A DNA stretch of 64,000 bases from the NCBI RefSeq assembly GCF_052425735.1, contig NC_135767.1:14818001-14882000 (forward strand). The letters run 5' to 3'. Below are positions 291 to 44,800 of the stretch, piece after piece (positions within the stretch are counted from its first letter, which is position 1; the number at the start of each line of letters is the position of its first letter). The position numbers and the translations under genes were made by a program. Under the pieces are notes generated by a model. It did no database searches and was not told where the DNA came from. It saw nothing but the letters and a program-made list of their open reading frames with translations. This stretch comes from Oculina patagonica (Eukaryota).

Positions 291-3200
291 CGCGTACATC
301 GACTCCCTTATCCCGCCCAGCCGATCTTCCGGTCTTTTTGCGTAGGCTCAATGGATTCATCCGAAAGTATTAAAAAAAAGACATATAAAATAGCTGCATT
401 CGCTACAGAACATCGAGCAACGATAAAATTAAATACTCCAGCAACGACTACAGGATTTTTATCCCCATTTTTATTATTTTATTCAAAAGCTAAAAATTAG
501 AAATTTTAACAGCGAGCAACATGAAACTAAAACAGAAATACAAAAACATTGAAAATACCTTGTATATTAGAAGAAAAAAATAATTCCGTCATTTTATCCA
601 ACACCAATTTTAACTAGAAACTTTCTCCCAAAAATCACTCATTTCACAATTCCCTGTTTAAAAAGGCAAAAAAAGCTAACACAGTCCTCACTACAGGTCA
701 ACAGACTACTGTTGTTGTTGTTTGTTTGTTTGTTTGTTTTTTCAGAATTTGATCGCTTAGTGACTTGCTCAAATTCACCAAAACTTATCCTCGGCATACG
801 TAAAAGTTGTCGTTTTACGAGAGGATGGAGGAAAACTGCTTTTAGTGGTGTACAACTAAAATCCCCTCTTTAAAAACGTGTTTTAACCCTATCATCAAAG
901 CAAAGCAAATTAAAACGAAATCAAACTGTTCAAGTCTAAATCAACGTAATGTTCCTGATGTGGGATTCCTTGATCCGGTAACCTCCCCGCGGAACGTGTT
1001 AGATAACCATCAGCCTCACCACATGCCCGACGGTCTTCTTCGATGTTCGGCCAGTGATGGTCGCCAGCACTTCGTCACTGCTCCCTCGTGCAGCTGAGGA
1101 TGGTGCCTTGAAGGCGACGGAGAAGAAGCTTTTGCGGCCTTGACGAACAGTGATGGAGGTGCGGCGAAGATGGGCAACATATTTTAGGCGATCTTTGACT
1201 TTGATGTCAAAAATCTCGGTTGAGCCTGTGTTGTAGACCACAAAAATCACGAACCCACGGCCTCCAGCCGGTATTGTGTACTCGTTCCTGGCGTAAAGGA
1301 CCCTAATCAGGGCGTGGCTGGGATGGACTGTGTTATGCGAGTTGCGTTCAAAGGGGTACCCTTTCTTTGTTGTCCCTCTCAGCTTTAACTTAAATGGTAC
1401 TGAAGGAGGTGTGAATGAGGCTGAGAAATGTGCTCCACTTGTTCCATGAGGAGACACAGTAGTTGTGCCTAGGCGCCTCTTATCCATGCTCATCAAATCA
1501 AGGCTAAGCGACCTGCTGTTGATCTTATTTGCTCCAGCAACTGTTAAGATGACCACCGCTTTCTTACCTATTAAATTTTAAAAAATCTGGTAAGCAATGA
1601 AACTTTATTTTGCGAAATAAATTAGGTTTGAATTTAAATACTGGCTGCATGAACTTGTTTGTATCTTATTTGCCTTTTTTTTTTACCTTCGATATGTTAC
1701 ATGTACAGCCGTGTAAAAAACCTTTTTTAACTTTTCAGCTCGTTTAGTATATTACTATTCTTGTTTTTTTGTTTGTTTTATTGCCTTTTTTAAAGTTACT
1801 TTGTTTTTTGCTGTAAAACAAACTATTATTATCTTTTTTTTTCTAGCAAAGTAAAATGTTTTTTTTGTTGTTGTTGTTGCTATTGTTTTTTTTTATTGTT
1901 GTTATAAACAGTTAATGTCGTGCATTTTTTCTCTACTGAAGCATTTTTGCTTCTAATTAACGGTGAGACAATAAACTAAGTAACACTTACCTAGGAGAGG
2001 ATGTGAAATAGGTATTGGTTTCCTGCTTCTTCCACGGGTTGGAATCATCACAAAAAAGTACTCGAAGTCGATGTTTGTTTTGCTTGAGCCTTTGATCAAG
2101 TAGGAATGTTTGCCAGCTCCTGCACGTACATCGACTCCCTTATCCCGCCCAGTCCATCTTCTGGTCTTTTCGCGTAGGCTCAGTGGATTCATTCGAAAAA
2201 AAAAAAAAGACATATAATACAGCCGCATTCGCTACACAACATCGATCAACGGTATAATTAAATACTCAAGCAACGACTACAGGATTTTTATCCCCATTTT
2301 TATTATTTTATTCAAGAGCTAAAAATTAGAAATTTTAACAGCGAGCAACAAGAAACTAAAACAGAAATACAAAAACATTGAAAATACCTTGTATATTAGA
2401 ATAAAATCCGTCATTTTATCCAACACCAATTTTAACTAGAAACTTTCTCCCAAAAATCATTTATTTCACAATTCCCTGTTTAAAAGGCAAAAAGATAACA
2501 CAGTCCTCACTACAGTTCACCAGACTACTGTTGTTGTTTGTTTTGTTTTTTTTTTGTTTGTTTGTTTTTTTTTTGCAGAATTTGATCGCTTAGTGACTTG
2601 CTTAAAGTCACCAAAACTTATCCTCGGCATACGTAAAAGTTGTTTTTCGAGAGGATGGAGGAAATCTGCTTTTTGTGGTATATAACTAAAATCCCCTTTT
2701 TAAAAACGTGTTTTAACCCTATTTAACCCTATCACCAAAGCAAAGCAAATTAAAACGAAATCAAACTGTTCAAGTCTAAATCAATGTAATGTTCCTGATG
2801 TGGGATTCCTTGATCCGTTAACGTCCCCGTGGAACGTGTTAGACAACCATCAGCCTCACCACATGCCCGACGGTCTTCTTTGATGTTCGGCCAGTGATAG
2901 TCGCCAGCACTTCGTCACTGCTCCCTCGTGCAGCTGAGGATGGTGCCTTGAAGGTGACGGAGAAGTAGCTTTTGCGGCCTTGACGAACAGTGATGGAGGT
3001 GCGGCGAAGATGGGCAACATATTTCAGGCGATCTTTGACTTTGACGTCAAAAATCTCGGTTGAGCCTGTGTTGTAGACCACAAAAATCACGAACCCACGG
3101 CCTCCAGCCGGTATTGTGTACTCGTTCCTGGCGTAAAGGACCCTAATCAGGGCGTGGCTGGGATGGACTGTGTTATGCGAGTTGCGTTCAAAGGGGTACC

Positions 3201-3954
3201 CCTTCTTTGTTGTCCCTCTCAGCTTTAACTTAAATGGTACTGAAGGAGGTGTGAATGAGGCTGAGAAATGTGCTCCACTTGTTCCATGAGGAGACACAGT
3301 AGTTGTGCCTAGGCGCCTCTTATCCATGCTCATCAAATCAAGGCTAAGCGACCTGCTGTTGATCTTATTTGCTCCAGCAACTGTTAAGATGACCACCGCT
3401 TTCTTACCTATTAAATTTTAAAAAATCTGGTAAGCAATGAAACTTTATTTTGCGAAATAAATTAGGTTTGAATTTAAATACTGGCTGCATGAACTTGTTT
3501 GTATCTTATTTGCCTTTTTTTTTTTTACCTTCGATATGTTACATGTACAGCCGTGTAAAAAACCTTTTTTAACTTTTCAGCTCGTTTAGTATATTACTAT
3601 TCTTGTTTTTTTGTTTGTTTTATTGCCTTTTTTAAAGTTACTTTGTTTTTTGCTGTAAAACAAACTATTATTATCTTTTTTTTTTTCTAGCAAAGTAAAA
3701 TGTTTTTTTTTGTTGTTGTTGTTGCTATTGTTTTTTATTGTTGTTATAAACAGTTAATGTCGTGCATTTAAAGCATTTTTGCTTCTAATTAACGGTGAGA
3801 CAATAAACTAAGTAACACTTACCTAGGAGAGGATGTGAAATAGGTATTGGTTTCCTGCTTCTTCCACGGGTTGGAATCATCACAAAAAAGTACTCGAAGT
3901 CGATGTTTGTTTTGCTTGAGCCTTTGATCAAGTAGGAATGTTTGCCAGCTCCTG
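291..3954. repeat. ~1.83-kb tandem duplication (291-2122 / 2123-3954) of the gene A 3' end
   Basis: The junction at ~2122 fuses exon-4 sequence (gccagctcctg) to downstream flank (cacgtacatcgactccc, compare 291). The intron, last exon and 3' flank are repeated. Confidence 0.9.
999..1567 (-). CDS. Duplicated terminal exon of gene A (second copy, intact ORF and acceptor)
   Basis: Nearly identical to 2839-3407, with 4 aa differences (V/I, Y/F, T/A, V/I). The aatttaatag acceptor is retained. Confidence 0.6.
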
Positions 3955-5123
3955 ACACAATCAATTTCCAAGTTCCTGGCCTTGGGTGGTTGATCTCGTA
4001 AATAGCTGCTTTCGTCAGAGAAATCTTTCCCGAGGTAACACGAGCTCCTCTTGGATCTCTGAGGTTAATGCTTGGCCCAGTTCTCTCGGTTGAGACGGAG
4101 ATGATAATCTTTTCTGTGGAATCATCGACAGGGATGATGTATGTGTAGGAAGACCCTCGTGGACTCCGCCTCCTTTTTCCTGTTGAGCTATTAGAGTCCC
4201 CGTTGTCTAGGCAAGTAGTTCCTCCGAGTGTGACGCTAGTTAAACCTGAAAGTTTTCTCAGCTCATTGCTGTTGGGAAGTATAAGCATTTGGCCGCATGT
4301 TTCACTGGCCAGCTTCTCGAATGGTGCATACGAAGAATGCCAGCACCATCCTTCATTTATGAAGAAGTTTATAGTGATATCATTATCTTCAGCCTCCGCC
4401 AGCACTTGAAGAATATTATAGTCGGTTGCATCTTTTGCTTGTGCATCAGTGAAAACATAAAGCGGCGAACCACCATTTGGGCTTTTGGCCATGGCTTCAA
4501 GGATTCCCTTGAAAGTCAGCTCGGGACAATCTCCACCGGCATGTGCGTTTAGAGCTTTGATGGCGTTCTTGAACTGTGTCCCATTACCGTAGCTTTTGTA
4601 AGTAACTGGGCCGGTTCCTTCAAACATACAATTGAGAAATAGAAGAGATAGTGTTTATAATGCATATTTTAATATGTTCTTATCGATCAATCAATCAATC
4701 AATTAATCAATCAAGGCTACGTTAATCTTCAACCCTAACCAGGAGGAGGAGGAGTGGGGGGGGGGGGGGTGCCTTTGAACGCTTATCACTTTTTCTAGAT
4801 TCAACCAAACGCTGCCAAACTTTGCGAGTTTATCTAAAATTTATCTGGGAATAATTCGGTAGGATAGGTTGTTGTTTCTGCAACAACATTTTGACAGATC
4901 TGTTTTCCTTAAATTTGTAATTTTTGTGTTTCTAATAATAACTTTAATGCAATTATTTTTACCTTTCTAGTTTTTTTGCACTGTTTGTTTTGATTCTAAG
5001 TACTTTTCAGTTATTTTGGGCGTTTTTTGACGTCCCACGTGACGTATATCAAAAGATGAATATTGGGACATGCTATATATCCTCTAAATTACATTATGAT
5101 TGCTTAAATATTCTGGACGTTAC

Positions 5124-5155
<32 letters not shown>

Positions 5156-8100
5156 AGTCCCCCTCGGTCTGAGAAGACTAATAAAATCCCGGTCTGAATA
5201 GGGTTAAAGGTGGGAATATCAAGGTTAACAAGAGCGAGCGAGGGTAAACGACACGCCGCAATTCATTTCTTTGAATTGTGTTACATTTTATCTTGACCGA
5301 GAAGCATATAGTGTCGCTTGTATAGCAAGGGAGCAGCATGACGTTTAGTAAGATTGGAGTAAGAAACATTTGGTAAATGTTCTAAAGAAATAAAAGGTGT
5401 TATCATCATTATTTTACAAAATATGTACCTGGATCGTTGAAAGGTGATAGAATGAAATCTACTTTCACGTCTCTTTTATGATTGACAATCGATATTGCGA
5501 TGTCTTTAGCAGCTTGAATTGCACCACTCATACTTCCAGTGTCATCAATGGCAAACATTAAAGTGACTTCGCCATTGACACTCATGAAGGTGTCAAATGT
5601 AGAATTACCAAGCTCTTTTTTAATGGCATCCATAAACGTCTTCACGGCGCTGGTGGCACCTCGCCTTTTTCGGCCACTCTTCTTATCCAGTTGCATTACT
5701 GTGTATAAGCCATGCCCAAGAGATTTGCGTGCAAACAGATAGTTCCGTTTCTTGGTCGCTAATTTGATGTTCGCTTTTATCTTAGCCAGTCGACGGGCAC
5801 TATGACTGTATCGAGATCCGGCGGCCTGTGCCTCGTACACTGCTCTTTCAATTTGATCAAGTGCCTCTAGGAACTTGTTCGATGGCGAAGTCCGTTTTGG
5901 CGGCGGAGGTGGGGGTGGAGGTGGAGGTGGTTTCACGACTAAAAAAAGAAAAGATAATTAAGGGCCCTAAAAAAAATTATAATTGCGGAAAAAAGAAACA
6001 TCAGAACTTAATGAACATAAACATAGAGAGTAAAAACAAAAACAAAAACGTATGAATCATTATCATCGCAATTAATACATAATATACTTAAAGAGCAGTG
6101 TCACGGACAACTCATCTTGAAAACAATTGGAATTTGTTGTTGCTCACAATGCCTCGTTGAAACGACCCTTGTTTACTTTCGGGTTAAAATTACTCCGTTA
6201 GTGTTTTTATCTTAGAAAACTTCTGTTTTGAGGTCTTCTTCAATTTGAAAGTAATCAGAAAAATGCATCGAAATACAGTGACATACCTCCTTTAAAGAAA
6301 TACTCGATTTTGATTTGGTGAGGCTTTAAAATTCCGCGGTCTGGGCAGAAAAGTAAATACCCGGTACAAAGTTGTACGATATGTGACTTAATGACCTGCA
6401 AGTACTTCCAAAGATCATTAGAAGGACCACGACGATTGCTTGAACAGAAAACTTTTTAGTTTACTTATTTTTAAGTTTACTTATAAGTTTACTTATTTGG
6501 TGTAACATAACTTAAAAGTTATGTTACACGTATCTGTAAAGCGGGAGTGGTGAAATTCATTTCTTTTAGAAACTCTACAAATTATCTAGACAAAGAGTGG
6601 TCTATATTAACTGTGGTAACTGGACGACTCGTATATTTCAACTATTTTAATCGATCGCTGTCTTATCTCGTACAAATCGTATAAATTCATCTTATAAAAA
6701 TTATTAGTATACTTAAAAACATATATCTGACTTGATTTATAAAAAGGTGGCTATTCGGGATTTTAAGGATCCATTTACCTTTGGTTAGTTTACCCCAGTC
6801 TCCAACTCGTTGTGTCTACCGGACTTCAATACATTTGAATTCTAAGCGCGCGCGCTGATTCGGATAACAGAAGTGTTCTAGCTTTCTATTTTGCTGTCTA
6901 AAGAAAGTTTGCCGGAGGACATCATTAAGTCCCGTGAAGGTAAAAGTCTTACGATTTGCAAGTTATGCGTCGGCTGTTATCGTACCTCAAACCGAGCTTT
7001 AGGCGGGTAAACACAGATAACCGGTCTTTTCGTTTTGCCAGGTACAAATAATGTTGAGCTTGCTTTAGACAGCAAAGGTTTTTAGCCATATCAATTAGGA
7101 CTCGGAACTAGACTATAGGGCTGATTTGAAGTCTTACGATTTGCAAGTTATGCGTCGGCTGTTATCGTACCTCAAACCGAGCTTTAGGCGGGTAAACACA
7201 GATAACCGGTCTTTTCGTTTTGCCAGGTACAAATAATGTTGAGCTTGCTTTAGACAGCAAAGGTCTTTAGCCATATCAATTAGGACTCGGAACTAGACTA
7301 TAGGGCTGATTTGAAGGCGGTCGTAACGATATTTGGCTTGAACTTTACCGTGGCTAAAGACTTTGTTTTTTACTGTTGAAGTGTGGGGAGCGGGCGTTAC
7401 GCGCTCGACGACATTCAAAGACATCCGGGACATTGTCGGTTATTTCTAAAAGAAACATGTCGGAGTGGATAGCCAAGGAATCGCTTCAATTGCTGATGTG
7501 AGTACATAGTTTTCTTGTGTCCTCAATTTTAGGCGTTCTCCGCCTTACACTCATAGTTCTCTGTGATTCGCTAGTGGGAGGCAATGCGATCGTGTGCATT
7601 TCCGGCCGCGACAATGGAGTTGACAATTGAGATAACACATGCCCGCTTCCTCTCGATATTTCGCCTGATTTGCTTAAAGTTGAATCGAATGTCGATGTAG
7701 AATGCTTTAGTTCAGTTTATTTGAGACGTGCATGCTTTAAGAAAGCTACAGTTCAGCTCTCCGCCGAGTGTTGTCTTATGTCTATCTTGGTGTTAATTTT
7801 GACTCACATTTCAAGTTGTAAACACTCTTAATTAAATTGATAGAATTCTTGATTTAAACAAAATGCCGTATATGCAGACTTTTTGGTTCAAAACACATAA
7901 ACTAGAGTACGTTACGTTAAACTTGAGCTAAAATTAGCCCTCATTCAGCGTTCGTTACAGAAATATGCCTTGTGAACTATGGTGTCGTGTCAAAATTCGG
8001 GAGACACCTTTTATCAAATCAAGTCAGATATGAACAAAACAAAACAAAAGAGTTCGCAAAGAGAACGTTTACAGTGAATCTCTGCATTTCTCTCTGCATT

Positions 8101-11100
8101 ACCACGCGACTGACAGGCATTCAGGTGGTAAACCATACAAGAAAATAACAAAAAATAACAAACGTCAAGCAATCTACGCGATTCTCACACTTGCTTCATA
8201 CCTTCCTTGGAATACACCAGCTAGAATTATTTTTTGTTGGTAGTTATGCTGTCCATTACAGGTATTTTGTTTTCTTTTTTTAATGCCTAGATGACCATCA
8301 TTCTGGGTAACTACGACTACAACATCCCCCCAAGCCGTTTCATTTGTTATAATGCTTCTGACCTGTTAGTGATGCCTTTAGTTGTGAATTAACAAATGAC
8401 AGTAGAAAAGTGTCATACTTGAATTCAACCATTTCTGTGGTTCCTGTGGAACATTTTTTGATGAAGCTCATCCTATCGGATTTCATATTGGATTGGTTTC
8501 TTTGTGTACTCACAACGTGCTTATGAGTTCTTTGTCTAGCTGCAGAATACTCGTCAGCGTGTCTGCTAGGTCGCGTTAGACGCGAGTGTCTTTATTACGA
8601 GTCGAGTGGTTTTATGGCCTGATTACATGAGCCGGGCTGGCCCGGTTAGCCGGGCTGGCTCGGTTTGCCGAGATGACTTTCAGCCCGGTATTACATGAGC
8701 CCGGTTTGCCGAGATGACTTTCAGCCCGGTTTTAGCATGAATGATCAGAGCACGAATGATTTTAATCACCTTTTTCCGACAATTTGGTGGTTAAATGTTT
8801 TGCACTTATGCAGCTGGATGGGTAACTTTACCTGTACATCCTATTTAGAACGAGTAGCATTGATTTTTTCATCGGATATTGTGCTCGGAAAAGAAATTTA
8901 ACGCTGGCCCGCTTAGCCGGGCTGGCCCGGTGAACGCGATTACATGGAAAATTTTCAGCCCGGCTAGCCGAGATCCCGGCATCGCGATACCGGGATCTCG
9001 GCTAACCGGGCTGGCCCGGTTGTCATGTAATCGCGAAGTTGATTTTTGTTGCGTTTAACAGACGTGCCGAGATCTCGGCAAACCGAGCCAGCCCGGCTCA
9101 TGTAATCAGGCCCTTACTTTGAATTTTCCAGGTTCATAATTAAGCTCAAAATGGTTTCCTTGAATTTCATACCCCACTTTTCAGCACAGTAGAGGATTCT
9201 TGAAGGTATTGTTAAACAGTGCAGTTACATGTATCGTTTCCAAAAAGGTAGTTGATGCTGACCACGTTTGTCAGCGCAAAGAACTTGCAAAGCATCTTTC
9301 TCTATCGACTACACCTTCTGAAGAACTGTTCTCAATGGATGAATACAACAGTGAGATCACCACGGCTGTTGAGACCCTTGGTATGTCCCAATTATTCCGG
9401 CGGTGGATTCCCTCAAAGGCATCTTATGCCTTTGGATGCTAAAAGCAGTACTTTTGTTGTCTAAATTCAGGATCCGCTAGAAATTGGCGGCACTCAGGTA
9501 TCTCATGAAGCTAAGGGAAAACAGAGTTTTGTTGAAAGGTGGCGAAGTCGTTGTTCCTCGTTAAATGGCTGCGTACCATGAAATCAACTTGTTTGCGATC
9601 GTGCAATTCCACTTCTTCCTAATCCAATCCATTAAATGTGTTTCTATGGCTAAAACACTCAAAAACACGCTATTGGATTCTCCTTCAGGAATTACTTAAA
9701 CATTCCTCTTCTCTACGCCAGCAAACCATTATTCACTGTTCTTGCAAATAGTTAACAAGTAACCTTGGTTTATGACCTTTTGATAGTAAGCTAGTGGCTG
9801 TGATAGTCACATGATGAATTTTGTGTTTTTTCCCGTTGTTATTACGGGTTTGCCTGGCGTTTCTTTCTGGATTCGTATGTCATCACTGATAATAGTTCCT
9901 TGGTTAATTCTGACTTTTTTATGAATAAGTTGGGTACGTTGACATCCACGCTTGTCTGGTTATGCGCGTTTCTAGGATTCAATTATCTTCTTTGAGCCAC
10001 TAATGTTGAGCGCCATGTGTTATGTTGGTTCTCCTTTAGGCGACTTCCCAAACATTTTCCCTACTACACTCTGTACGAACCACGTTTTAAATACTATGTC
10101 ACGGATTTTATCAGATTTTTGAACAGTCAAAATTTATGTTTGTGTCGCATGAAAACTATTAATAATAGTCCATTTTTATTTTAAACAGTTCTCACAAGTA
10201 ATTAAAAAGTTGTTCTCTCTAAGGTGGTTGTATTGGCTTTGTTTAAGTGCTAAAACATGTTTTATCTTAATTATCGGTTTTAATTTTTCCCTTGCTTCAG
10301 ATTTTTCTGTACACAAGCAGGCTTCAACTGGCTGGCGTCAAGACAGGTTGGATTCCCATCTCCCATCCCTCTCAGAATTCTGCATTTCAGGATCTATGTG
10401 GTGTAACTTGATTCTTACAACTGCTCTCCTCGTCATTTTGCAAGGTGTAATTCCTGCAGCTGGACTGTACTGCGTTTTGTCTCTCAAGACGATGTTATTT
10501 TGTCTTTCAAATGTTCATTTCTCGCTGTCTTGTTCAATGTTTGTATTGATCTCTCCAGTTCGCCGTTCTCCTTTGGGTGCATGGGGTATCAGATTGTGTT
10601 GTTAAAATCCCTCTTGTACTACCAAGTCATTAAATTCTTTAGTACTGAAAGGTGCTCCATTGTTGCTCTTTGCTCTTATACGAGTTCCATAAGTAGCAAA
10701 AATGTGAATCAGTAGCCTCTTTTTTCCGGCTTGGAAGCTTTTTGTTGGTACTGACTCAACCACTAGATATCCGGTTTTCTTGTCGATCACAACCAGGTTT
10801 TTCGGGACCGTCCGGGTATGGTCTGCCGTGGTCTATGGAGACCGTGTTTCTTGGTCGACTTTGGGTATTAAAATTTGTTACCTTCAAAGGTCCATCTCCT
10901 TTCTTCGTTTAAGCTACCTGGCATTCAAAGCACCGTTCAATAGCTGGTCGTGCTGTTCATCAGGGCAAAAGAGTAGTTCTCTTTTAATAGTTGTTTTGCC
11001 TTGATTTGCATACGATTCCTAGTCTGTGTCCTATATTGACCACTTTTCTCTGCTGGTAGTACTACGCGCTGTTTTTTTTTTCGAAGATTAGTTCCTGACT

Positions 11101-14100
11101 ACAATTAACTGGATAGCTCTTCTTTGATATGTAGGTATGGCTTTATGTCTTTGCCTCGTTTGTGTTTCTGCCAGTTTTCTTTCATAATCCTCTTTGCTAG
11201 TCGCTACATCACTTCATCTTTAAGGGTTTCGTCTCTCATTTATGCGACGCCCTCTGCATGCTATGGTTTTTTGGTCTATCTGATAACATCTTGGTCTTGT
11301 CATCTTCTGCCTCAGTAAGTGGGTGTCTGGAAAAGTAGTCCCGGGGTCCGCTTTGGCCTTTTTTGCCTCGTGCACTAATTCATAGCCTACGTCCTGCATT
11401 TCCGTGACCCATTTCTCTAGGCTGAATGGCACCTTCACCTTTTGCTTTGTTGAACAGGAGTAGCACAAGTAAAGGCTTGTGCAGTATAACTGAATCTAGC
11501 TTCTCCAAGTAGGTAGATTCTCAGTCTCTCCTTGGTCCATTTAATGGCTATGGTATCGTTTTCAGTCTGGCTGTATCTTTTCTCAGTCTCTATCGGTTTT
11601 AGGCTGATGAAGTGTACTGGTCGTTTGCCTCTCTCTCTGTTTCCTAAAGAAGGGTTGCTGATAAGCCTTCATTGAAGCTTGCTTCTGTGCTTCTGTGCGA
11701 AGAATTATTGGCTTCCTTGGGTCAAAGATTGTCATGTTCTACCCATTTGAGATGATGTCTTGCATTTTCCTGAATGCCTTCTAAACTGCATTTCCCCTTT
11801 TGAACGTCATTTCTTTTGCTATGGCTGCGTAATTGTTGATGAATCTGTCTAAGTAGCATGCCATTCCGGGAAAGTTACGGACGGCTTCCTTGTTCTCAGG
11901 TACTCCGCGCTCTTTGATAAAGCAATGAATTAAGTCCGTCTCTACAAAAGACGTCGATCTCTCCATTCCCAAAACGGCATTTCTCTCGGTTGATTGAGAT
12001 TCTGTGGTCTCTTGCTTACTGGAGTACTGTCTTAGCAAATCTCTGTGTTATTTGTCAACTTGTCCCGCAAAGAATATACCATTTCTCCGTTTCAGTCAGT
12101 GGTCTATGTCTCCGAAGATTGTAAATAATTATTGTTTATAAAGATATTAGGGGGGCTGGGGTTGGTAGTTTCTCCAAGATGTGCTAAATGTTGTCACTGC
12201 TCTGGTTGTCGGGTCCAATGTCAATTGATGGTATCTTTGTCTAAGATTCAATTTCGTTGAGATCTTGCAGTCGAGGAGAAGGTAGATAAAATCATTCACT
12301 CCTGATGGTTGAATGCATGGTGTTCGTTATATATGTTTGTCTGGGATCACCATATCCATGCTTGCTCTTATTGATCGTTTGAAACGCTAGCTCTTCTTTC
12401 TACACATTTGTGTAACATTGCTTCAGCAGTAGGAACTGAGATGAGCACCACATGAATCGTTCACCCGGCCTCCGGCACCTAGATTATCTCCTCTTCGACT
12501 CCCTATCCGAGCCACTCTTTTATCGGTTTCTGCAGATGGTATGTTACTGGTCGAGGTTTCTGAGCCACAGGAATTGCTGCAGATTCATCTCTAGCTTGAA
12601 GTTGAGTTTCAATATCTCCTATTCTGATGAGAACTGTGTTCTGGCCTGCACTTGGCCTTATCTTCTTCGCTTGGTGTAGTGTGTTGCGTTGTCTGCTGGA
12701 GGTATTCGCTGTCCCAGTAGCTGCTCCTTTCTTCCCAGCATCTTTGTGCCTTCTTGTCTCCCCCTTTACATCTTTTTAGGATTTCTTACTGCCCGTTTTG
12801 TCCTGCTCTGAAACACGGTGCGTAGTGGTTGTATTTGCCACACTTCAGGCTCTGCTTTCCATAGGCTGGGCAGCTCCAGCAGCCCAGGAGATAAAGTCCT
12901 GTTTTCCCACAGTAAAATCGGTTGTTCTTAGTACTTCTTTCTTTCTGTTTGTGGTTTTCCTTTCTTGTGGGCGCTTTTATTTTCTGGCTGGGAGTGTAGA
13001 ATTGTGTTTCTTCGTCCACTTTCTTTACCGCATTTATGGGCGACTCTCTGATTGTTGATTGATATCGTCCATATCGCTTGCTTCCTCGATAAACTGATCT
13101 AGGTTACACTTCCTCTTGATACTTTTTTTAAATATATCATTGTCCCTGATAGTTTGTATTACATGCCTGTAAACTATCTTTTTGTTCCAGGAGTGGTGCT
13201 GTGTAATCGACGACGCTTTCTCCCGGCTCTAGTCGTCGTTTCCTAGACGTGTATCTCGCATATTGTTTGTTGTTCTTCACAAGAAAATGGTTGTTCAATT
13301 TTCCTCTTCAGGTTTTAGTAATCATCTTCCCGGCCTTCCGCCGGAGCGTCCGGCAGGCTGCGTGCATGTTCTTTTGATCTCTGGTCAACCATTTTCACCT
13401 GTGCTTTATTGAGCAGGGTAATGAATAGAGACTTGTGGCCTGTAACGATTTTATATCAATGTGATCAGTCTCCCCTTGGCCCAGGCAGAAAAAAAATTGT
13501 GCTGCTGCCGCTTCGTAATTTTTGATTAAAATGTCTAGAAGCATGCAATTCCGGGAAACCTGCGACGTCTTTCTTGTTCTAAGGAACTCGGCACTCTTTG
13601 ATTGCTTTTAATTCATAAGTTAAGTCGGTGGAGGTTTCGTCCATTTTTACCAAAGTCCAAGGAACTCAACAGCTTGCATTTCTGCACAAACTGGCAATTA
13701 ACGTAGATCTTCAGCGCACTCACTATGTCTTTCTTATTGGTAATTCGAAATATGGCTTCCTCTTCGAAGTCCTTCAGCTGTTTCTCCCACGCTCGGCCAA
13801 CTTCAAGATGGTTGTCCGATTTTTTGAAAGGTCCTATCCGTTAAGTGTATTATCCACGGTGGTTACTCTAACTTCTGTAGCGGCGCTTACTCCTTCGTCA
13901 AAAATGTTGCTTTTTCTTCTGTCGAGCACTGATCGCCTCTACGAATTCTTCTCGGTGTTTATCTTTACTCGTTTTTAGTTTCGTTCTGCTTTGAATTTGC
14001 GAGTTTAATAAAAAGCGAACTAAACAACCTCGGCCTTTTGTATTGCGGCTAAAAATTGTTTCTCGCCCTACGCGTAGAAAACTACGACTTTGTAACGCCG

Positions 14101-14839
14101 GAATGGACTTTTCAATAAATAACGTAAATTGACCTTAGGCAACCTCTAAGAAAAGACTAAAATTACCACACAGTAAGAGGAAAAGACTTATTTACACACG
14201 GATGCAAAAGAGAATATAAAGAGCGGAGGCTATAGAGAGATGGTTCGCTAGCTAGTTTGAAATGTTAGAGTACGATGGAAAAGGATCGTTAGCGGCGAAT
14301 TTTTAAGTAAAGCATCCGCTAGGAGTCGAAAGTAGAAATTGTCTGTAACACACTTAATATATTCAGCACTACCATAGTGAAAACGCAAATAATAATTCAG
14401 TGATAATAACTTACCAGAGCGGCGGCGGCGGCGACCTGAAAAGAAATAAAATAACAAATTAATAAATACACTTTACATGCTTGCAAACTATTTGTTTTAA
14501 TTTTCGTTATTATAAGTGCTATTAGGTGTAGTCTTGTAGTTTGATGGCTCTTAGGGTCGATATATAGCGTTTTTCATTTATAAAAGAAAGGGGGAAGAAG
14601 GACGCAAAGGGTTAAAACTCACCAGACCAACCAGACCAACCCCATCCTCCGCCTCCGCCTCCGCCTGGTGCAACCCCAGGTCGCAAAGGTGGTGAAGTAG
14701 TTGGTTTTGGCGAACTAGCACCGGATGAAAATGACATTAACGCGTTTCTTGTATCATCTAACGGAGAAGTGTAGAGGTTTTGGGTAAACACCAGATTGGT
14801 CAGAGCTGTCACAAGTGCAAGGCAAAAAATTGCCTTCAT
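2839..14839 (-). CDS. VWA7-like secreted protein, gene A (5 exons, ~703 aa)
   Basis: Exons 14839-14623, 14435-14415, 5938-5429, 4617-3823 and 3407-2839. All introns are GT-AG and phase 1, and the exons sum to 2112 nt in frame. Signal peptide MKAIFCLALVTALTNLVFT. vWA MIDAS-type motifs FAIDDTGSM, GGDCPE and VFTDA as in VWA7/hemicentin, then beta-rich C-terminal domains. An upstream in-frame ATG at 14872 is also possible. Confidence 0.85.
4733..5203. mobile_element. piggyBac-like MITE in gene A intron 3
   Basis: Termini CCCTA...TAGGG flanked by tcaa/TTAA, with internal poly-G tracts. Confidence 0.5.
6092..6291. mobile_element. Kolobok-like MITE
   Basis: TTAA-agagcagtgtcac ... gtgacatacctcct-TTAA: imperfect TIR with TTAA TSD. 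Confidence 0.5.
6723..8031. mobile_element. Non-autonomous DNA transposon (~1.3 kb) with ~27-bp TIRs
   Basis: atatctgacttgatttataaaaaggtg (6723) versus caccttttatcaaatcaagtcagatat (ends 8031). Confidence 0.7.
6944..7316. repeat. 185-bp direct tandem duplication inside the TIR element
   Basis: Two copies starting aagtcttacgatttgc at 6944 and 7129; I found only one mismatch (ggtttttag / ggtctttag). Confidence 0.9.
8615..9113. mobile_element. PIF/Harbinger-type MITE
   Basis: TIR (t/g)ggcctgattacatgagccgggctgg ... ccagcccggctcatgtaatcaggccc, TTA on both sides, many internal gccggg sub-repeats. Confidence 0.8.
9850..13980 (-). mobile_element. Decayed Ty3/Gypsy LTR retrotransposon (gag, RT, RNase H, integrase remnants)
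   Basis: Minus-strand fragments: gag/zinc knuckle CPAYGKQSLKCGKYNHYAPC (~12810-12875); RT STKLNLRQRYHQLTLDPTTRAVTTFST (~12180-12260); RNase H EASFNEGLSA and RYSQTE (~11560-11690); integrase IFATYG..SNNGAPF (~10650-10710). Many stops and frameshifts. LTRs not identified, so boundaries are approximate. Confidence 0.8.
14415..14435 (-). CDS. 21-nt micro-exon of gene A encoding (G)RRRRRS
   Basis: Minus strand reads ttttcag|GTCGCCGCCGCCGCCGCTCTG|gtaagt: strong acceptor and donor, phase 1-1, frame preserving. Confidence 0.75.
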
Positions 14840-17800
14840 GTTGACGTGGAAAAACACACTTTGGGCCTTCATCGATTCTGCTAACCTCTGCTGAAAACTG
14901 AGCGTTTTCGGTAAATTTAAATCAAAATCCTCAACAAACAAAATTTAATGTTTGTTTCTCATAAGTAGGTTACCAGAAAAGTGAACGCGTATAATTCTTT
15001 TGTGGCATCTGTCAGCAAATTGAAAATATTTGGAGTAGCAGTATTTATGAAATCATTATCAAGTCTTTCGGAATTGCAAACTGACTAAACTGTTACGGAG
15101 AAACTTTCGGGTTTACAAACTGACTACAATTGTTACGGAGGGAACGAGAATTGACCGTCCACAATCGACATGTAGCCGTGATACAATAGTGTATTGAAAG
15201 TGAGGCTTTGTCAACGTCTTCACCCTGACTTTTTTTTTATTAGTTCACATTAAAATCAATATTTACCCGTGAACTGAGTCCCCTTATTGTCGAACGATCA
15301 ATGTTTACACGACTGTCTTCCACCTCTTTTTAATAGTCCAATGTATGACTGGGTAACCCGCCAGAGGACAAACAACTATCAAACTATTATGTGGAATTAT
15401 AATAAAATATCATAAGTTAAGAAAAGATGCACGTCATAAGGAATATTTCTGAGCAATAAACTGATAGAAGTTTTTTTTTTGGAAAATCTGACAATCTGGA
15501 GTATTTTGCTAGTACACCAGTATACTTTTGGTTTTTCTTCAGTGACCTAGCTTGGTTGCTATGGCTTTGTATGTTTTGAAACGTCCGTCATGATCACGAA
15601 AAGAATCTAGGCGCTAATAAATAAAGTGAACTTATTTATAGATAAGCGCTGTTATAAAAATTTTAACCAAATTTATTAACCTCGGCCATTGTTTTGGTTG
15701 CATGACCTAAATTCATATTAATGTTTGAGTGAATGCTGTAGAATGGAACATTTCATTTCAAGGCTAACCAAGTGGATTTTTCGTGGGTGCTTCATCTTTG
15801 AATTCATGGGCTCTTACATTTACTCCCTCGCCTTCTAAGTCATTACCACTTGAACGTATTTTCGCTACACACCAGTCTGATATCCATCGATACGTTCTCG
15901 GTATTTGCAGCGCCTAAGCGAGACGAAAATTCCTACCGAGGAAATATCAGGGAAAAAGAAACAGTTTCATGAGAAATAAAGTATTTTTACTGCAAATTTC
16001 TACCGAGGCAAGTGAAAGAAAAGAGAAAAAAATCGAAGAAAGCTCTGGGGAAGAAGACAGTCTTTGTTTTGAAAATAGAGGTTAAAAAATTGGGTAAAAC
16101 TTACTGAAAATTAAATAACTATTAAAACTTCACAACAGTCGGCGCCGTTGGAATGAGAGTTATCAGCAAAAACAAACATCAGCTCACCATATTTGTTATT
16201 TCCAATGTTTCCAAATAACAATTCAAGTAAGATTGAAGTCACTATTTCCAAAGGGTCGCTTACTTTTATCAGTGAAATTTATCACTACTCTTGGTCGGAA
16301 CCTTAAAGGTTCTTATTAGTGTTTTATTGCATTTCCATATACATTCACCAAATGTCAAGCTGATTAAACCTATTATTAATACATTATTATTAAACGGGCT
16401 GTATTAGGAGTATAAGGTCATCGTCGAAACGCACCGAGGGGTTTACTTAAATAAGCGATTTCAAACAGGCGGAGCTTGGCTACAGAGTATCCTACTCTTG
16501 GGAATGGTAGAAAATTCTACACCGTCTATGCAATATATCTCAGATGGCTTGATTCTTCACTATTCTCTCGATCGTTCACACGGCACAGTCTTCGCTGACG
16601 CGTGAGCAACCACATGTACCCTTGTTAACTTATGCCTTCTATTTTCGTTTATTTTAAGTGCATTCTTAAAGGGATGGGTCACTCATCGTATACCACACAA
16701 TTTTGCTTGCGAAAATTTCAAAGGTCATTTAAATTGAATTCTAAGCCTTGCGTTAAAAGGCGCCAGTAAGGTCCAATTGATAAGTCGCATTTTAGTCGTG
16801 TCGAATTTAAATCGAGTGCCAGAAACCGCTTTTAATCAAATAAATAACTAAAAAACACAGATAACAACAAATTTGAAATTTTCGTTGATTCCAGGATGTA
16901 CTCCAAAGTAGTTGAATCGATTAATATTAGCGATTGTGGCGGCCTGGAATATTCAACACAACTAAAATGCGACATAAAAAAGACGTAATTTCCACGGGCT
17001 TCCCCTGCTTCCATTACTGCGACATTTACTGTGACAATTAATTTGTGTTTAGACAAGTAGTTTAGGAAATAAGTTTCTAACAAAATGATTTTTTTTTTAA
17101 CTGTAGACCCCAAAGGTGATGTAAAGAAAAAGACGTGCCATACACCATACAGTCAAGCAGGAAGTAACGATATCGTGTTTGTAACAAATCAACGAAGGTA
17201 CGCTATGATGTTATAGGGGTCAAAGCAGACCACATTTATGGTCGGCTTCTCGGATGGGTTGTGCATGCAATTAGGCTTGTTTACATGAAAAATTGCTTTT
17301 GGCCATGCATCTCTGAGTGTGCCATTTTCGGTTGCTCGCCAGATGACAAAAAAATAAAGATGTTACGTCATTTTTTTAGCTCGTTAAATGAATGACTTAC
17401 ATTATATAACGTACTATCTCAGGTAAAATCGGTTAAACATAACTGGGAAATTGCCATCAGCGTCCAGCGTGAAAACGCGGAAGCAAAATTGAATGGAAAG
17501 GGTTTTTCTTGTTTGAATACTAACTTGCTTAGCTTAAGCGACAAAATGACATGGGCTTTTCACGAAATTGATACGCTTGTCATGTTATTGATTTGCTCAG
17601 TCCTTTGTTATAGTTTCATAACAAAGGCCAATATTTTTTTCAGTGTCCGGCTTTCAGCTTTGTTAAATAGAGAACTCAAAATTGATTGGCAAAGGCGCCA
17701 GAGAATAAACATAAATCTTCATATACAGTGGTAAAATTCTTATTACCTAAAATGTCGCAAATTAAACTCGTTACCCTTGTAAAAAGCCGTTATCGAATAA

Positions 17801-19960
17801 TAAACTCTGCAAGCTTTGTCTTCTGTAAATATGAACACTGACACTTTTACAGTTTTGGTAGAACGGTCAGCGTGGTTCCCAACGTTCCTTTGAATGTGTT
17901 TAGTCGCTACGTGTTGCTGAAAACATGACAAAATCGGCAAGGTAGTATAAACCGCGAAATAAAATAATTGCCAGTCTTAGAGTGATAGCGGCAACTTTTC
18001 CATCCTGCCATATATATACAGCAAAACACGTCCCGCTTCGAAACGTTACGGTAACAGTTTCGACCACATTTCGGTGCGAATCCTCGGGAAAAATAACGTC
18101 AGCGGAATTTGATTTGATGGATATGCGGCAATGCGAGGCGCAAGAACTCAAACTTTAGAACTAGGTAGGAAAAACGTATCAGAAAATCAGGAATTTCGAT
18201 GTCAAATAACTTTCATAAAAAAAGACTTTTTTGCGTTATATTTTTAATCATAAACGTTAAATATTAGGTATGTGTTTTAACGTATATAAAACTTGAAAAT
18301 TACGGCGCTTTCTACTTCGTTTCGTGAAACCTTTGCCCCATTTTCAAAATGGCGGATTTTCCTGCGAAAACCTCTATGGCAGAAATCAAATATTCACTAG
18401 AATAACGATAATCGTATGGCGCGCGAGTTTTCGTCAAGAAAGGAAGAGCAGGCAAACATAGCAAAATACTAAATACTGCGAGACTAAATTGAGCTAATAA
18501 TCATTAGCTGATAATTATTTTAAAGATGGCGGAAGCATAACAAAAGTGAAAAGTCTGTTAGTTGCCGTGTTCTCGATGCACCGAGAGCACGAGAGGTAGA
18601 GCTCGGATTTTAGATCCGAGCTGGACTCAATCTACGAGTACAGGATGTTGCCGCGCACGTTTATAAGCGATCTAGAGCGAAAGCGACATCCATTTTTGCA
18701 ACATCCAGAAAGCGTTTCGTTACTCAGCACTTTGAGAGCAGTGCAATCAACAACGATACATGCAACGATTGCCTGAGGATAATGATGCCATTTACTGATT
18801 GCAAAAGTATTAGCTAGTACCTTTCAAGAAATTGTTTTCTCGTTCTTGGCATCCCATCATTTGAGCAAAACTTCAAAGTGATATGACGGCGGCTTCCAGG
18901 TTTTCCCTGACCATAATTGTTCGCGCAATAGCTGAACCTTTCTGGCATCGTGGTCATCTAGCTAAAGGCTTCTATTAATTATAAACATCAATTCTCACAG
19001 CTGTCTTTGTTACCGATAAATGATGAAACAACATTTCGACCCGAGCCGTCACGTACAATAATTGCACAGTAACTGTTTATTTTAGAAAGTCCGCTGAATG
19101 CACAGTGAGCGCGCCGTCTTAAAAGAAGACTGGCACGAGGCAGTCACGCCACTGATATGGTTGAAAGCACTTTCGTTTTAAAGTTTTAAACTGACGCAAA
19201 TTAAAAAAAAAAAGATGCGTGCGTACTGCTGAGAACAAGCTGAAAGTTGAAGCTTGGAAACAAAATTAAAGCGAATATAAACCACCTTGATATACTAAAA
19301 TGTATTAGGAATCGCAAATAAATATAAACGAAGAATTTGGAAGACGCAGTTAGACAATTCGACTCGGCATGAACTTTAGATATCCTTCGGTGAAAGACAT
19401 GCAAAAAGGTGTTTACATATTTAACAATATAAACGAAGTAAAGGTGTTTTTGATTTCTCTGAAGTTATATACCCTAAGTGCGCCCATCTTTTGGGAGGGG
19501 AGGTCGCATAATCCGAATATTGTTTAAACAATTCTAAAAGCTTCTGCTAGCGTTAAATAAGCCGTCAAAACTCACACACCCTCGAGCTTTCTATCACTTC
19601 ATTGAAGAATAGATTTTATTCATAACGTTAAACAGAATGGAATTGTCTTTCCGCTTAAATAGTCCCAAACAAGAGGAAATTTTGATAACATTTACAAGTT
19701 GAATGATGTCATATTTGATTGCTCGCTATCTTTCAATCTGTTCGTGGTTTCCAGCAAGTTGTTTCTGTTCCTTCTGTTATGAATACTGAATTATAATGTA
19801 TTTAACTATTTGATCAACTTTTCAACATCAGCTACTTCATACCGGCGCAATGCCTCGCTAAGCTCAAGCTGAATTTCGCTAATTCTGTTAATTAAGTATT
19901 TTTGACCTCTTTAAACGTATAATTACCAGCATAAAATTAAACTTAACAACTGTTATTGCT

Positions 19961-41823: not shown

Positions 41824-44800
41824 ATGTTTCTTTGTCTGGTCGCCGTTCTGTCCTTGAGTATGTCCGTCCTCGCGCAGGATCTGTTCACGTCTCCCTTGGA
41901 CGAAGTAAGGAACACGTTACTGACTTATTCTACTGGTTCCTCGACGGCGCCGACAGTAACACCAACGACATATAAGAAGCCGGCGTATAATTGGGGTTTG
42001 TAAAGCTTATTAATCTTAATGATCTTCCAGGTTCCTTAAATTAAACCTTTCTATTTCTTTAAAAAGCGCAATCGAAATAAACACGGCATTGCTTAAAAGG
42101 CGTACCATACATAACGCCATAGTCGGCAAGACAAGGAAAACAAGTTACAGCAATTTTAAGCTACATATTTATTCGAAGCCTACAACATCGATTAACTGGA
42201 TATTGAAGGTCGGCATTTGGAACCAATCAGTCGCTCAGCAGCATGGACCAATATTATCTAACTCAGTTCAAACTCATCCTTTTTTCGCATTGTATTGATG
42301 ATGATAAGTAAAAAATATATATATATGAAAAACTTGTGATTGATGGATCCTTAACACTACATTTCTCACCGACCAAATTGAAAATGTGTTGCACATGAGG
42401 CATTACTGTTTAAATTTGCTTTATAGGGCGCTTATCCTCTGCCAAACTTAACAGTCAGTGACGAATCATTTGTTTCTGATTATTTTATAAGTAATTTTTT
42501 CAGGAAATGCTGTTATGCCCGCTTCGGTTGACATATCAGTTTCGTCCTGCGGCTCAAGCCAAATCTCGGCAAACCCTACGACACCCCCAAAGCCAAAGCC
42601 TACAAAGCCTTCCAATAAATTCCTCGGAGCTGTCGATGAAATTGAGAAAGCCCTCTACGAAGCCCAGGCTGCTGGAAATCGCTACAGCCATACGGACGCC
42701 AAATTGCAGAGAATCAAGAAAAGCATTAAACTCGCTGCTCAAGAGCGAAGCTATCAGTTTTTTCGTCAATCCCTTGGCCACGGTCTGTTCACTGCAATGG
42801 TACTAGACAAAAAGGCAGGTCGTAAAAAGCGAACACCAACCAACCAAGTGAAGAAGTTTATGGATTCCATCAAAACGGAATTAGGCGATTCAGTATTCGA
42901 TACTTTCATGGGTGTTCATGGGGATGTCACACTGATGTTCGCTATCGATGATACTGGAAGCATGAGTGGCGAAATTCAAGCAGCTAAGGACATCGCAACC
43001 TCAATTGTAAATCATCAAAGAAATGGGGCAGTCGACTTCATCCTGTCTCCCTTCAATGATCCAGGTAGCATAAAATATCGTACCGTATTGTTTCCCTCTT
43101 CCCACCTTTCCCTTACTTTCCTCTTTTCCCTTCGGCTGTCCCCTTCCCACTTTCCCATACCCATTCCCTTTCCTTCTATGCACTTTCCTCCCTCTCTCCC
43201 GCACCCCTTTCCTCCCTGCACGTCCTTCCCCTATTCCCCCTTTTCCCTTCCAATGTCACCTTTCCCCTTCCCTATCTGCACTCCCTTTTCCCTCCCCCGC
43301 TCTTCCTCTCTTGTCCCCCTTTTCCCTTTTACTCTCCCCTTCCACCTTCCCTCTCTGAACCTTCTTTGTCCTCTCGTGTTCTTTCCCTCTTCCCTTCTTC
43401 CCCTTTTCCTCTCTTTTCTTTTTCCCAGTTCATACTTCCCAATTTTTCTTACGTTTTTTTTTTTTTACCTTTCCCCCCTCCTTTTCTTTAAATCGCCCCC
43501 TTTCTCCTTGCTTTCTTCCTAAATTCCCCATCTCTCTTTCGTCCTTACATTGTCTCCCTATTTTCAGTTTTCTCACTACCACTTCCCCATTCACTTTATT
43601 ATATATATCCGTCTATCAGCCTTTCGCCTTCCTGCCTCATTTCCCTTCATGCCCTCTTTCCAACATTTCTTGTTTCTCATTTCAGTTTCTCTGTATTCCT
43701 TCTACCTTTCCCTTCTCCTACTTTTATTCCTCCACTTTTCCCCCCTCCACCTTCCTTTATCCGTCCCCGCCCTTCCCCTTCCCTCTTTTTTCTTCTCTCT
43801 TTTTTACCTTTTTCTGTTATTGTGTTTGCCAGATCTTTACCCCTCTCTCCTCTTCCCTGACCATCCCCTATATCTTGTCTCCTTTTTCTTCCCTATTTTT
43901 CATCCCACCTTCCCCTTTCCTCTTCCCGTTCCCGATTTTTCCTTCTCACAATCCCTTCTTCTTTTATTTTCTATTCGCTTCATTTCCCACGCTTTCCCTC
44001 TTACCTTCTTCCACACTCCCCAATACTTTTCCCCTTCCCTCTGTCACCTTTCTTATTATTCCTTCTCTCCAGCATCCCCATATCTTCATCTCATCTTTTC
44101 CTTTTTCATATTTACCATCTCCCCCCTATTTTGCTCGATGTCCTTCTTCTTTAATTTTTCTATATACTTTTTCCAACATTCCATTTGACCTCCTCTTTCC
44201 CTGATCCCCTTTTCCTTCTCCCCTTCCAATTATTTCTTGCTATCTACCTCTCCATTTTACGTCCTTTTTATTTCGGAATCAACGCTTTCCTTTCTGCCTT
44301 TTTCTCGTTTTAACTGCTGCTGTTTTATTGTCCAAACAGGTACAGGGCCAGTGGTTTATAGGGATCCTAGTCAGGGTGGCCAGTTCGTCAGAGACATCAA
44401 TGCTCTAAGAGCACATGCTGGAGGCGACTGTCCAGAGTTAACTTTTACAGGGATCCTAGATGCCATGAATTTTGGTCCTCTGCCAGGTTCACCGCTCTAT
44501 GTCTTCACTGATGCTTCAGCAAAAGATGCTTCTAACGAAAACTTCATGGATGCTGTTTCATTTGCCCGTGCAATGGGGCTGACAATAAACTTCTTCACTA
44601 CGGGAAACTTGTGTGGAAACCCATCTTTCAAGTCCTTTGAAGATCTTGCTAGAGAAACCTGCGGTCAAATGCTACGTCTTCCATCCAGCGATGACCTGAA
44701 GAAACTCTCAACTATAACTGGGATCTCGCTAACCGGCACAACGTGCCTTTGCAGTGGAGGAGATAACAGTGCAAGTGGCAAAAAGAAGAGGAGTGCTACC

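Follow-up and report, generated by a model that had tools for sequence, protein, structure and literature searches.

A 21-nt poly-arginine micro-exon in a VWA7-like gene of Oculina patagonica: transcripts, occurrence among stony corals and candidate function

The stretch of DNA analysed here (the window) covers 64,000 nucleotides of the genome of Oculina patagonica, and on its minus strand, within a gene that we call gene A, it carries an exon of only 21 nt that encodes little more than a run of five arginines. A preliminary description of this DNA had taken the exon for a cleavage signal and had proposed that its inclusion or skipping would turn on or off the release of an amidated peptide. 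The locus thus raises the questions of whether such a small exon is genuine, whether its splicing is variable, and what a run of arginines delivered in this way could contribute to the protein.

The micro-exon and the gene that carries it

Read on the minus strand, the micro-exon is in phase 1 on both sides and adds only the residues G-R-R-R-R-R-S. With its flanks it reads ttattttatttcttttcag, then the exon GTCGCCGCCGCCGCCGCTCTG, then gtaagt, the acceptor being pyrimidine-rich and ending in AG and the donor being GTAAGT. The preceding exon ends in ...GGATGGGGTTGGTCTGGTTGGTCTG before gtgagt at 14623, with the final codons GGA TGG GGT TGG TCT GGT TGG TCT G, and the protein reads ...GGGGGGGWGWSGWS at this place, followed by the split Gly codon. 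Within the window, neither the (CGC)5 run nor the GW repeat occurs a second time, and none of 100 shuffles matched (0/100). A micro-exon is usually defined as an internal exon of at most 30 nt with canonical splice sites that is present in mature RNA; the 21-nt exon, set between cag and gtaagt and with both of its sides joined in spliced contigs from two studies, corresponds to this definition. Therefore, on the evidence of its splice sites and of the spliced contigs, the exon described previously is real and frame-neutral, encodes only G-R5-S and follows the Gly/Trp-rich end of exon 1.

The transcript evidence comes from four runs, all of them consisting of assembled contigs, a kind of data from which rare variants and minor isoforms are dropped. 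Two contigs from two studies, X4 (1308 nt) and X2 (528 nt), pass from exon 1 (14630-14881 in X4 and 14630-14957 in X2) to 14433..14415 and then into a loose end that, once reverse-complemented (TCGTGAAACCACCTCCACCTCCACCCCCAC), is identical to the start of the exon at 5938. A third contig, X1, enters the micro-exon at 14435 and exits to the 5938 exon. Both junctions that the preliminary description had named for checking, 14623>14435 and 14415>5938, are thus present in spliced contigs from two studies, whereas the skip junction 14623>5938 was seen in none of the contigs of the four runs, among which a minor isoform could be missed. As all three contigs that reach the micro-exon include it (X1, X2 and X4, from three runs and two studies) and none skips it, the assembled contigs give no support to an on/off splice switch, and the micro-exon is included in every transcript seen in them.

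Some variation in length was detected next to the micro-exon and within it. The alignments place the end of exon 1 at 14630 because X2 and X4 lack one 9-nt GGTTGGTCT unit (G-W-S), and X2 contains six extra bases (CGCCGC) that result in R7 instead of R5; there are one or two GWS units, varying between transcripts of different runs. The use of an alternative upstream GT donor was considered as the source of the 9 bases missing from X2 and X4 and was rejected, since unspliced pieces of X1 and X6 share this deletion of about 9 bases; we take it, therefore, for a variant of the DNA in which the GWS repeat differs by one unit. The variation actually observed lies between genes and species, as presence or absence of the exon, and between transcripts of different runs, not between splice forms.

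Gene A was modelled with the guidance of P0242, its closest full-length orthologue (77-84% identical), and consists of five coding exons which, when joined, form an uninterrupted open reading frame of 714 amino acids (Table 1). The upstream ATG at 14872 (MKAQSVFFHVNMKAIF...) is more likely to be the start codon than the second ATG at 14839, because the orthologues show it. Downstream of a hydrophobic signal-like segment, AIFCLALVTALTNLVF, recognized by reading of the sequence and predicted to be a signal peptide, the protein is laid out as a conserved short N-terminal helix, a disordered Pro/Gly/Trp linker, a four-helix region and the VWA domain, followed by a galactose-binding-like domain, a beta-sandwich and an Ig-like domain. 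A MIDAS-type DxTGS motif is present (FAIDDTGSMSG). The exon at 5938, which is preceded by ttttttag, reads V-V-K-Pro11-K-R-T-S-P-S-N-K-F-L... and leads into the VWA domain. In the large intron 2, a strong AT skew was found at 10-14 kb, and the broken open reading frames listed in Table 1 look like retroelement remnants when judged by eye.

Table 1. Positions of gene A, of its paralogue and of an upstream exon within the window (numbering of the forward strand)
Feature	Positions	Strand	Description
Exon 1, gene A	14623..14872	-	Start codon, hydrophobic signal-like segment, motif QNLYTSPLDDTRNALMSFSSG, Pro/Gly/Trp-rich tail ending GGGGGGGWGWSGWS
Intron 1	14436..14622	-	187 nt, gtgagt...ttttcag; spliced out of contigs X2 and X4
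Micro-exon (exon 2, gene A)	14415..14435	-	GT CGC CGC CGC CGC CGC TCT G, reading (G)-R5-S
Intron 2	5939..14414	-	8.5 kb; broken open reading frames at ~10.6-13 kb; junction 14415>5938 from contig loose ends
Exon 3, gene A	5429..5938	-	V-V-K-Pro11-KR-TSPSNKFLEAL helical region, conserved SGRKRR site, start of VWA (FAIDDTGSMSG); Pfam VWA_4 (E 6e-9)
Exon 4, gene A	3823..4617	-	Rest of VWA, GKRRRS site, hemicentin-type galactose-binding-like domain; Pfam VWA_4 (E 2e-18), GBD_Hemicentin (E 8.5e-11)
Exon 5, gene A	2839..3407	-	Beta-sandwich and VWA7 Ig-like domain, stop codon; Pfam Ig_VWA7 (E 1e-6)
Upstream exon	18821..18913	-	Donor ...TTCTTGAAAG before gtacta at 18821; one contig joins it straight to the micro-exon, bypassing exon 1
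Paralogue gene B, exons 1-2	41825..43066	+	N-terminal motif as in gene A, single 0.5-kb intron, no poly-Arg micro-exon

The Pfam domains of gene A follow the order found in its orthologues, and this is also the order of the VWA7/hemicentin-N-terminal-like secreted proteins (VWA_4 PF25106, GBD_Hemicentin PF23560, VWA7_4 PF23610, Ig_VWA7 PF23619), with the difference that in gene A about 190 residues before the VWA, comprising the N-terminal motif, the GW/poly-Arg linker and the four-helix part, correspond to no Pfam model. Relatives that bear a name are proteins of anthozoans annotated as 'von Willebrand factor A domain-containing protein 7-like' or 'hemicentin-1/2-like', and in a maximum-likelihood tree gene A sits inside a scleractinian clade of the VWA7-like family. 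As the HET-C-like N-terminal domain of VWA7 (PF25107/PF07217), present in vertebrate VWA7, gave no PF25107 match in the anthozoan clade, including the orthologues of gene A, we refer to the gene as VWA7-like and not as an orthologue of vertebrate VWA7. Its product is a predicted secreted VWA7/hemicentin-like protein. Among the named Oculina proteins returned by protein database searches there was no model for it, and the gene models of coral genomes can miss micro-exons of this sort. For the paralogue, gene B, the preliminary description was accurate in reporting no equivalent of the micro-exon, a single 0.5-kb intron following exon 1 and no poly-Arg exon being present; the O. patagonica protein P0166 is identical to gene B at every residue of the part compared.

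Poly-Arg exons in other stony corals

At least five further scleractinian lineages, Acropora and Montipora among them, have a run of Arg at the equivalent place. Protein or mRNA models read ...GWGVSGWSG-RRRRR-SSSSRRKAIK... in Montipora foliosa (P0176) and ...SW(R/G)WG-RRRRRRRR-SSG... in Acropora (P0244 and P0246, with the codons AGA CGA CGC AGA AGA CGT AGA CGA), and a JGI coral transcript (L026) reads ...LGWGSS-RRRRR-YKSYR... In three further genes the run lies in a micro-exon identified in genomic DNA, with a length of 51 nt (S-R8-HSISRPSI, L020), 39 nt (SS-R5-SISYMR, L027) and 33 nt (SSS-R6-SH, L028); the three exons are preceded by a pyrimidine tract with AG and followed by GTAAG (GTACAA in L028), and all are in phase 1. 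An Acropora contig that retains intron 1 contains the acceptor ...ttgtttttcag directly before (W)G-R8. A size of about 45 nt is estimated for the micro-exon of Montipora from the fragment protein P0001 only.

Outside Oculina the Arg codons are mixed (AGA/CGA/CGC/CGT/CGG), whereas the run of Oculina is pure (CGC)n. Because of this mixture the run appears to be maintained as arginine at the protein level and not by repeat slippage, and the codons point to selection on Arg in the protein. The residues upstream are also shared: in most sampled species exon 1 closes with a G-W-x-G-like motif, and a Trp one to four residues upstream of the run is conserved in all the genes that bear it (GW.G). At the equivalent place a distant Nematostella paralogue reads GGGGGWGWGS-RPRPRP-PPAP and Actinostola reads WLRPRPRP.

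Several relatives lack the run. In the genome of a close relative whose exons are 92-97% identical (L021), the 3' flank of the micro-exon can be aligned, the exon itself is absent and exon 1 has GGGGFGG at its end. No poly-Arg run was found in the mRNAs P0242 and P0165, and the mRNA L024 contains no Arg run while keeping the ISIMYSMS tail. Such repeated losses in close relatives mean that the exon is dispensable. In the maximum-likelihood tree, gene A pairs with P0242 (support 100/98), both together are sister to the group of gene B (94/94), and Montipora plus Acropora cluster outside (81/82), in such a way that the genes that bear the exon are paraphyletic to those without it. This paraphyly, together with the identical position and phase of the exon, favours one ancient origin followed by several losses. 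Acroporids and Oculina represent the two deep scleractinian clades. The data thus favour an old poly-Arg micro-exon (21-51 nt, phase 1) that was present in both major clades of stony corals and was lost repeatedly, confined to one scleractinian orthologue group of the VWA7-like family. A micro-exon that encodes hardly more than a polybasic site, kept in the same phase across distant stony corals and lost time and again, is an unusual and clean case of a processing or charge element that is gained and lost as a module.

Candidate function of the arginine run

Judged by its motif, the micro-exon is a candidate for an extra furin-type cleavage site, a reading to which we give about an even chance. 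The furin motif R-X-K/R-R with a permissive P1' residue is matched by G-R-R-R-R-R followed by S, and the orthologues contain R5 to R8. When the Acropora orthologue was modelled with AlphaFold2 from an alignment of 34 sequences (mean pLDDT 80), residues 54-110, which hold GW-R8, had a pLDDT below 50, and the linker with the run was placed between the N-terminal helix and the four-helix region preceding the VWA. An R-x-K/R-R site is found just before the VWA in 30 of the 34 family members and just after it in 23 of the 34, and both sites fall in low-confidence loops of the same model. The genome contains many matches to the convertase P-domain, as well as PHM-type monooxygenase domains. Thus, of the cleavage signal proposed earlier, the fit of R-R-R-R-R followed by S to the furin/proprotein convertase motif and its location within a linker for which the Acropora model predicts disorder stand, whereas cleavage itself stays a prediction from the sequence.

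If so, the exon would serve only to supply an arginine run immediately behind the conserved G-W-x-G motif, in a disordered linker, where furin-type proprotein convertases would cut it in the secretory pathway. The run would then act as a third cleavage point beside the two family-wide RxKR sites, and the cut would separate an N-terminal piece of 50-60 residues from the rest of the pro-region. Secretion, cleavage and later trimming or amidation are steps that we infer, and the family looks like a multiply processed secreted protein. Should the run be cut, processing at three sites would break the proteins of this family into several fragments, and their function would have to be studied in a different way. 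The likeness to known furin/proprotein convertase sites (R-X-K/R-R) lies in the R5 followed by Ser, in the signal peptide predicted for the protein and in the vicinity of the two family-wide RxKR sites; the difference is that here a dedicated micro-exon encodes almost nothing else and that the run, with 5-8 Arg, exceeds the length of the motif. Polybasic convertase sites are commonplace, and what is new is that a micro-exon is devoted to such a site.

The excess of arginines over what a convertase needs also counts against a cleavage that is predicted from a motif, and it is one of the points in favour of the main rival reading, in which the run is not cut at all. In that case the arginines and the neighbouring Trp and Gly would form a sticky Trp/Arg module in the linker, tethering the protein to polyanions, for which glycosaminoglycans, the acidic skeletal matrix, nucleic acid or microbial surfaces may be candidates by analogy; the module may even act like a Trp/Arg- or Pro/Arg-rich antimicrobial segment. 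We regard this reading as possible, though on the unlikely side. The Trp conserved in every gene with the run is in line with it, as is the Pro11 that follows the run in Oculina. The RPRPRP stretches of Nematostella and Actinostola are cationic but are not furin sites, and cationic charge beside Trp may therefore be the property that is conserved. Cationic antimicrobial peptides rich in Trp/Arg or in Pro/Arg are well known, and the likeness to them is one of local composition, in WGWSGWSG-RRRRR-...-Pro11 of Oculina and GWGWGS-RPRPRP-PPAP of Nematostella; the coral stretch differs in forming part of a large protein, and the likeness does not extend beyond composition. VWA7-like family members have been reported among the immune-induced genes of Nematostella, where a VWA7 gene is common to antiviral responses (PMC13319465); this would fit an antimicrobial role, but the link comes from another species and may concern another paralogue. 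An objection to an uncut run is that poly-Arg is by its motif an excellent convertase substrate when it lies exposed in the linker of a secretory protein, and it would need protection to stay intact. A specific modification or motif involving the Trp residues, such as C-mannosylation (WxxW) or a WSxWS-type motif, was also considered; it fits Oculina (WSGWS) but neither Acropora nor Montipora, and it was discarded.

The dispensability of the exon and the composition of the run in Oculina, which is pure (CGC)n of a length that varies between transcripts, as expected for weakly constrained low-complexity sequence, are further arguments against cleavage, and they could also be accommodated by a run that is simply neutral filler, a triplet repeat prone to slippage that, within a disordered linker, became exonic by chance and has no specific role. 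In Oculina the run is (CGC)5, or (CGC)7 in another sequencing run, the adjacent 9-nt GWS unit varies in copy number, and several lineages lost the exon with the gene remaining undisrupted. Against this stand the position, phase and Arg identity kept across Acroporidae and robust corals, and the mixed synonymous codons, which can neither arise nor persist by slippage. We consider a neutral run quite improbable.

The model proposed in the preliminary description, by which regulated inclusion or skipping of the micro-exon would toggle the release of a pyroGlu...GWGWSGWS-amide signalling or antimicrobial peptide of about 53 residues, fares worst and is judged very unlikely. It has points in its favour: skipping would keep the frame, Oculina, Acropora and Montipora have a Gly immediately before the run, the Gln after the predicted signal-peptide cut is invariant among the orthologues compared, the PHM-type domains are encoded in the genome, and the mRNAs without the run in two other species could represent skipping. 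Moreover, some preprohormones of hexacorals are known to carry one peptide only, placed immediately behind the signal sequence (PMC7523074). However, no skipped contig was found in the four runs, and in the close relative L021 the exon is absent from the DNA itself, which is a loss at the level of the gene and not of splicing. The Gly that would donate the amide is replaced by Ser in L020, L026, L027 and L028, and the amide end is therefore not a conserved feature. In the would-be peptide, the C-terminal half shows little conservation of either sequence or length and differs even among Oculina transcripts; the N-terminal half (QNLYTSPLDDTRNALMSFSSG) is strongly conserved, with a motif that is invariant among the orthologues and is kept also in relatives without the cleavage site.

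The rule for amidation in cnidarians is a Gly before basic residues, in short peptides released from small dedicated precursors (PMC7523074). The protein of gene A resembles these preprohormones in its signal peptide and Gln, followed by Gly and basic residues in Oculina, Acropora and Montipora, but the candidate peptide has about 53 residues versus about 4-15, and its precursor is a large multidomain protein of extracellular-matrix type with 714 amino acids. Neither a conserved Gly donor nor a small dedicated preprohormone with short peptides was found here, and the main text of the inventory of cnidarian neuropeptides contains 0 occurrences of GW-amide or WS-amide (PMC7523074). The amidated peptide is thus not upheld as a conserved product of gene A.

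A broader scenario that brings several of these elements together is tentative and, taken as a whole, unlikely. According to it, the poly-Arg cassette would predate the split of the two main clades of stony corals and would have been kept or discarded gene by gene, with a length that is variable to this day; where present, it would free the N-terminal segment ending in GW, in a VWA7-like protein of an immune-induced family, as a pGlu...GW(S) peptide, amidated where the Gly is kept, or as a Trp/Arg-rich antimicrobial-like fragment, and the presence or absence of the exon, possibly also its splicing, would tune the processing of the protein. The 21 bases, which can be kept or deleted, offer a simple and testable way into a family of cnidarian proteins that is so far uncharacterised.

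A contig that joins an upstream exon to the micro-exon

One contig, the second record of X1, joins the micro-exon to the upstream exon listed in Table 1. A whole-genome pattern search assigned its upstream 30 bases to window positions 18833-18862, and its downstream part corresponds, apart from two SNPs, to the 5938 exon; an apparent match with 3 mismatches to 14447-14436 corresponds to the last 12 bases of the upstream exon. A second copy of the gene was considered as the source of this record and was rejected, since the genome-wide pattern searches put both of its parts at this locus.

The transcript contains an in-frame start, MMGCQERENNFLKG-RRRRR..., preceded by out-of-frame ATGs. A single-exon gene of the CECR6/TMEM121 family lies on the same strand at 19961-20986, and its stop codon is about 1.1 kb upstream of the 18821-18913 exon. 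An isoform without signal peptide, translated from the MMGCQ... start, was considered and set aside on account of these earlier out-of-frame ATGs and of the location of the exon about 1.1 kb past the TMEM121-like stop. Transcription probably reads through from the TMEM121-like gene into the upstream exon, which is then spliced to the first acceptor within reach.

Conserved basic sites on either side of the VWA domain

Gene A carries two R-x-K/R-R sites, SGRKRR and GKRRRS, whose positions are listed in the table together with the other features. In the 34-sequence alignment of anthozoan VWA7-like/hemicentin-like proteins, the pre-VWA site is conserved in 30 sequences and the post-VWA site in 23, and in the structure model of the Acropora orthologue both lie in low-confidence loops. 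The family-wide conservation and the position in such loops therefore suggest that the entire anthozoan VWA7-like family would be processed at multiple sites.

Features of gene A and its surroundings (window numbering)
Feature	Position	Strand	Remark
Copy of gene A 3' end	999-1574 and 1953-2129	-	corresponds to 2839-3414 and about 3791-3960
GKRRRS	~4190-4210 (gene A residues about 400-405)		C-terminal of VWA domain
SGRKRR	~5660-5680 (gene A residues about 170-176)		N-terminal of VWA domain
Disrupted ORFs	about 10600-13300		8.5-kb intron after micro-exon; judged by eye
(CGC)n repeat	14419-14433	-	length differs among transcripts of different runs
GWS repeat	14623-14647	-	length differs among transcripts of different runs
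Upstream exon	18821-18913	-	spliced onto micro-exon in X1 contig
CECR6/TMEM121-family ORF	19961-20986	-	

Variation in the linker

The linker encoded around the micro-exon varies both among Oculina runs and among corals. The 9-nt GWS unit GGTTGGTCT is present in two copies in the reference and in one in the assembled transcripts of all four runs (X1, X2, X4 and X6), and X2 has (CGC)7 where the reference has (CGC)5. A JGI coral mRNA, reading GWGG-ISIMYSMSKPD around residues 66-80, has no Arg run but retains a tail similar to the SISYM/HSIS tail of the micro-exons of other species; use of an internal acceptor or a deletion could be the origin of this form. Two models of the same paralog in Acropora paralog cluster 3, P0257 and P0258, differ only in the linker (SSRRRRASGGSLGSRRRSHRPS... 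vs. STKSRTSSSRRPKPKP...), suggesting that alternative exons or frames are also used there.

The upstream exon and its neighbour

In one X1 contig the signal-peptide exon is skipped, and the micro-exon is joined directly to an exon ending at 18821. A CECR6/TMEM121-family ORF lies ~1.1 kb upstream of this exon, which makes read-through the probable origin of such a chimeric transcript. It also contains a start in frame, MMGCQERENNFLKG-R5. A CECR6/TMEM121 gene is found upstream of the VWA7-like gene, in identical orientation, in an Acropora locus (ENA) as well as in the window, and therefore the synteny is conserved between them.

Divergent and duplicated copies

Record 6 of X2 contains a second version of exon 1, 92% identical and differing at its end (...SPPASKAYIILG...), for which no matching copy was found in the Oculina patagonica assembly. 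It is similar to the gene at locus L021 of a close relative (GCA_044670265.1; L021 4540-4660 and 9167-9330), which lacks both the micro-exon and Trp. The end of exon 1 is present in L021 as an additional, partial copy.

The 8.5-kb intron shows a strong AT skew, and its broken ORFs at about 10600-13300 look, by eye, like retroelement remnants. Downstream of gene A there is a tandem duplicate of its final exon and of the terminal part of exon 4; no upstream exons for this copy were found in the window, and the duplicated segments are 94-98% identical at the protein level.
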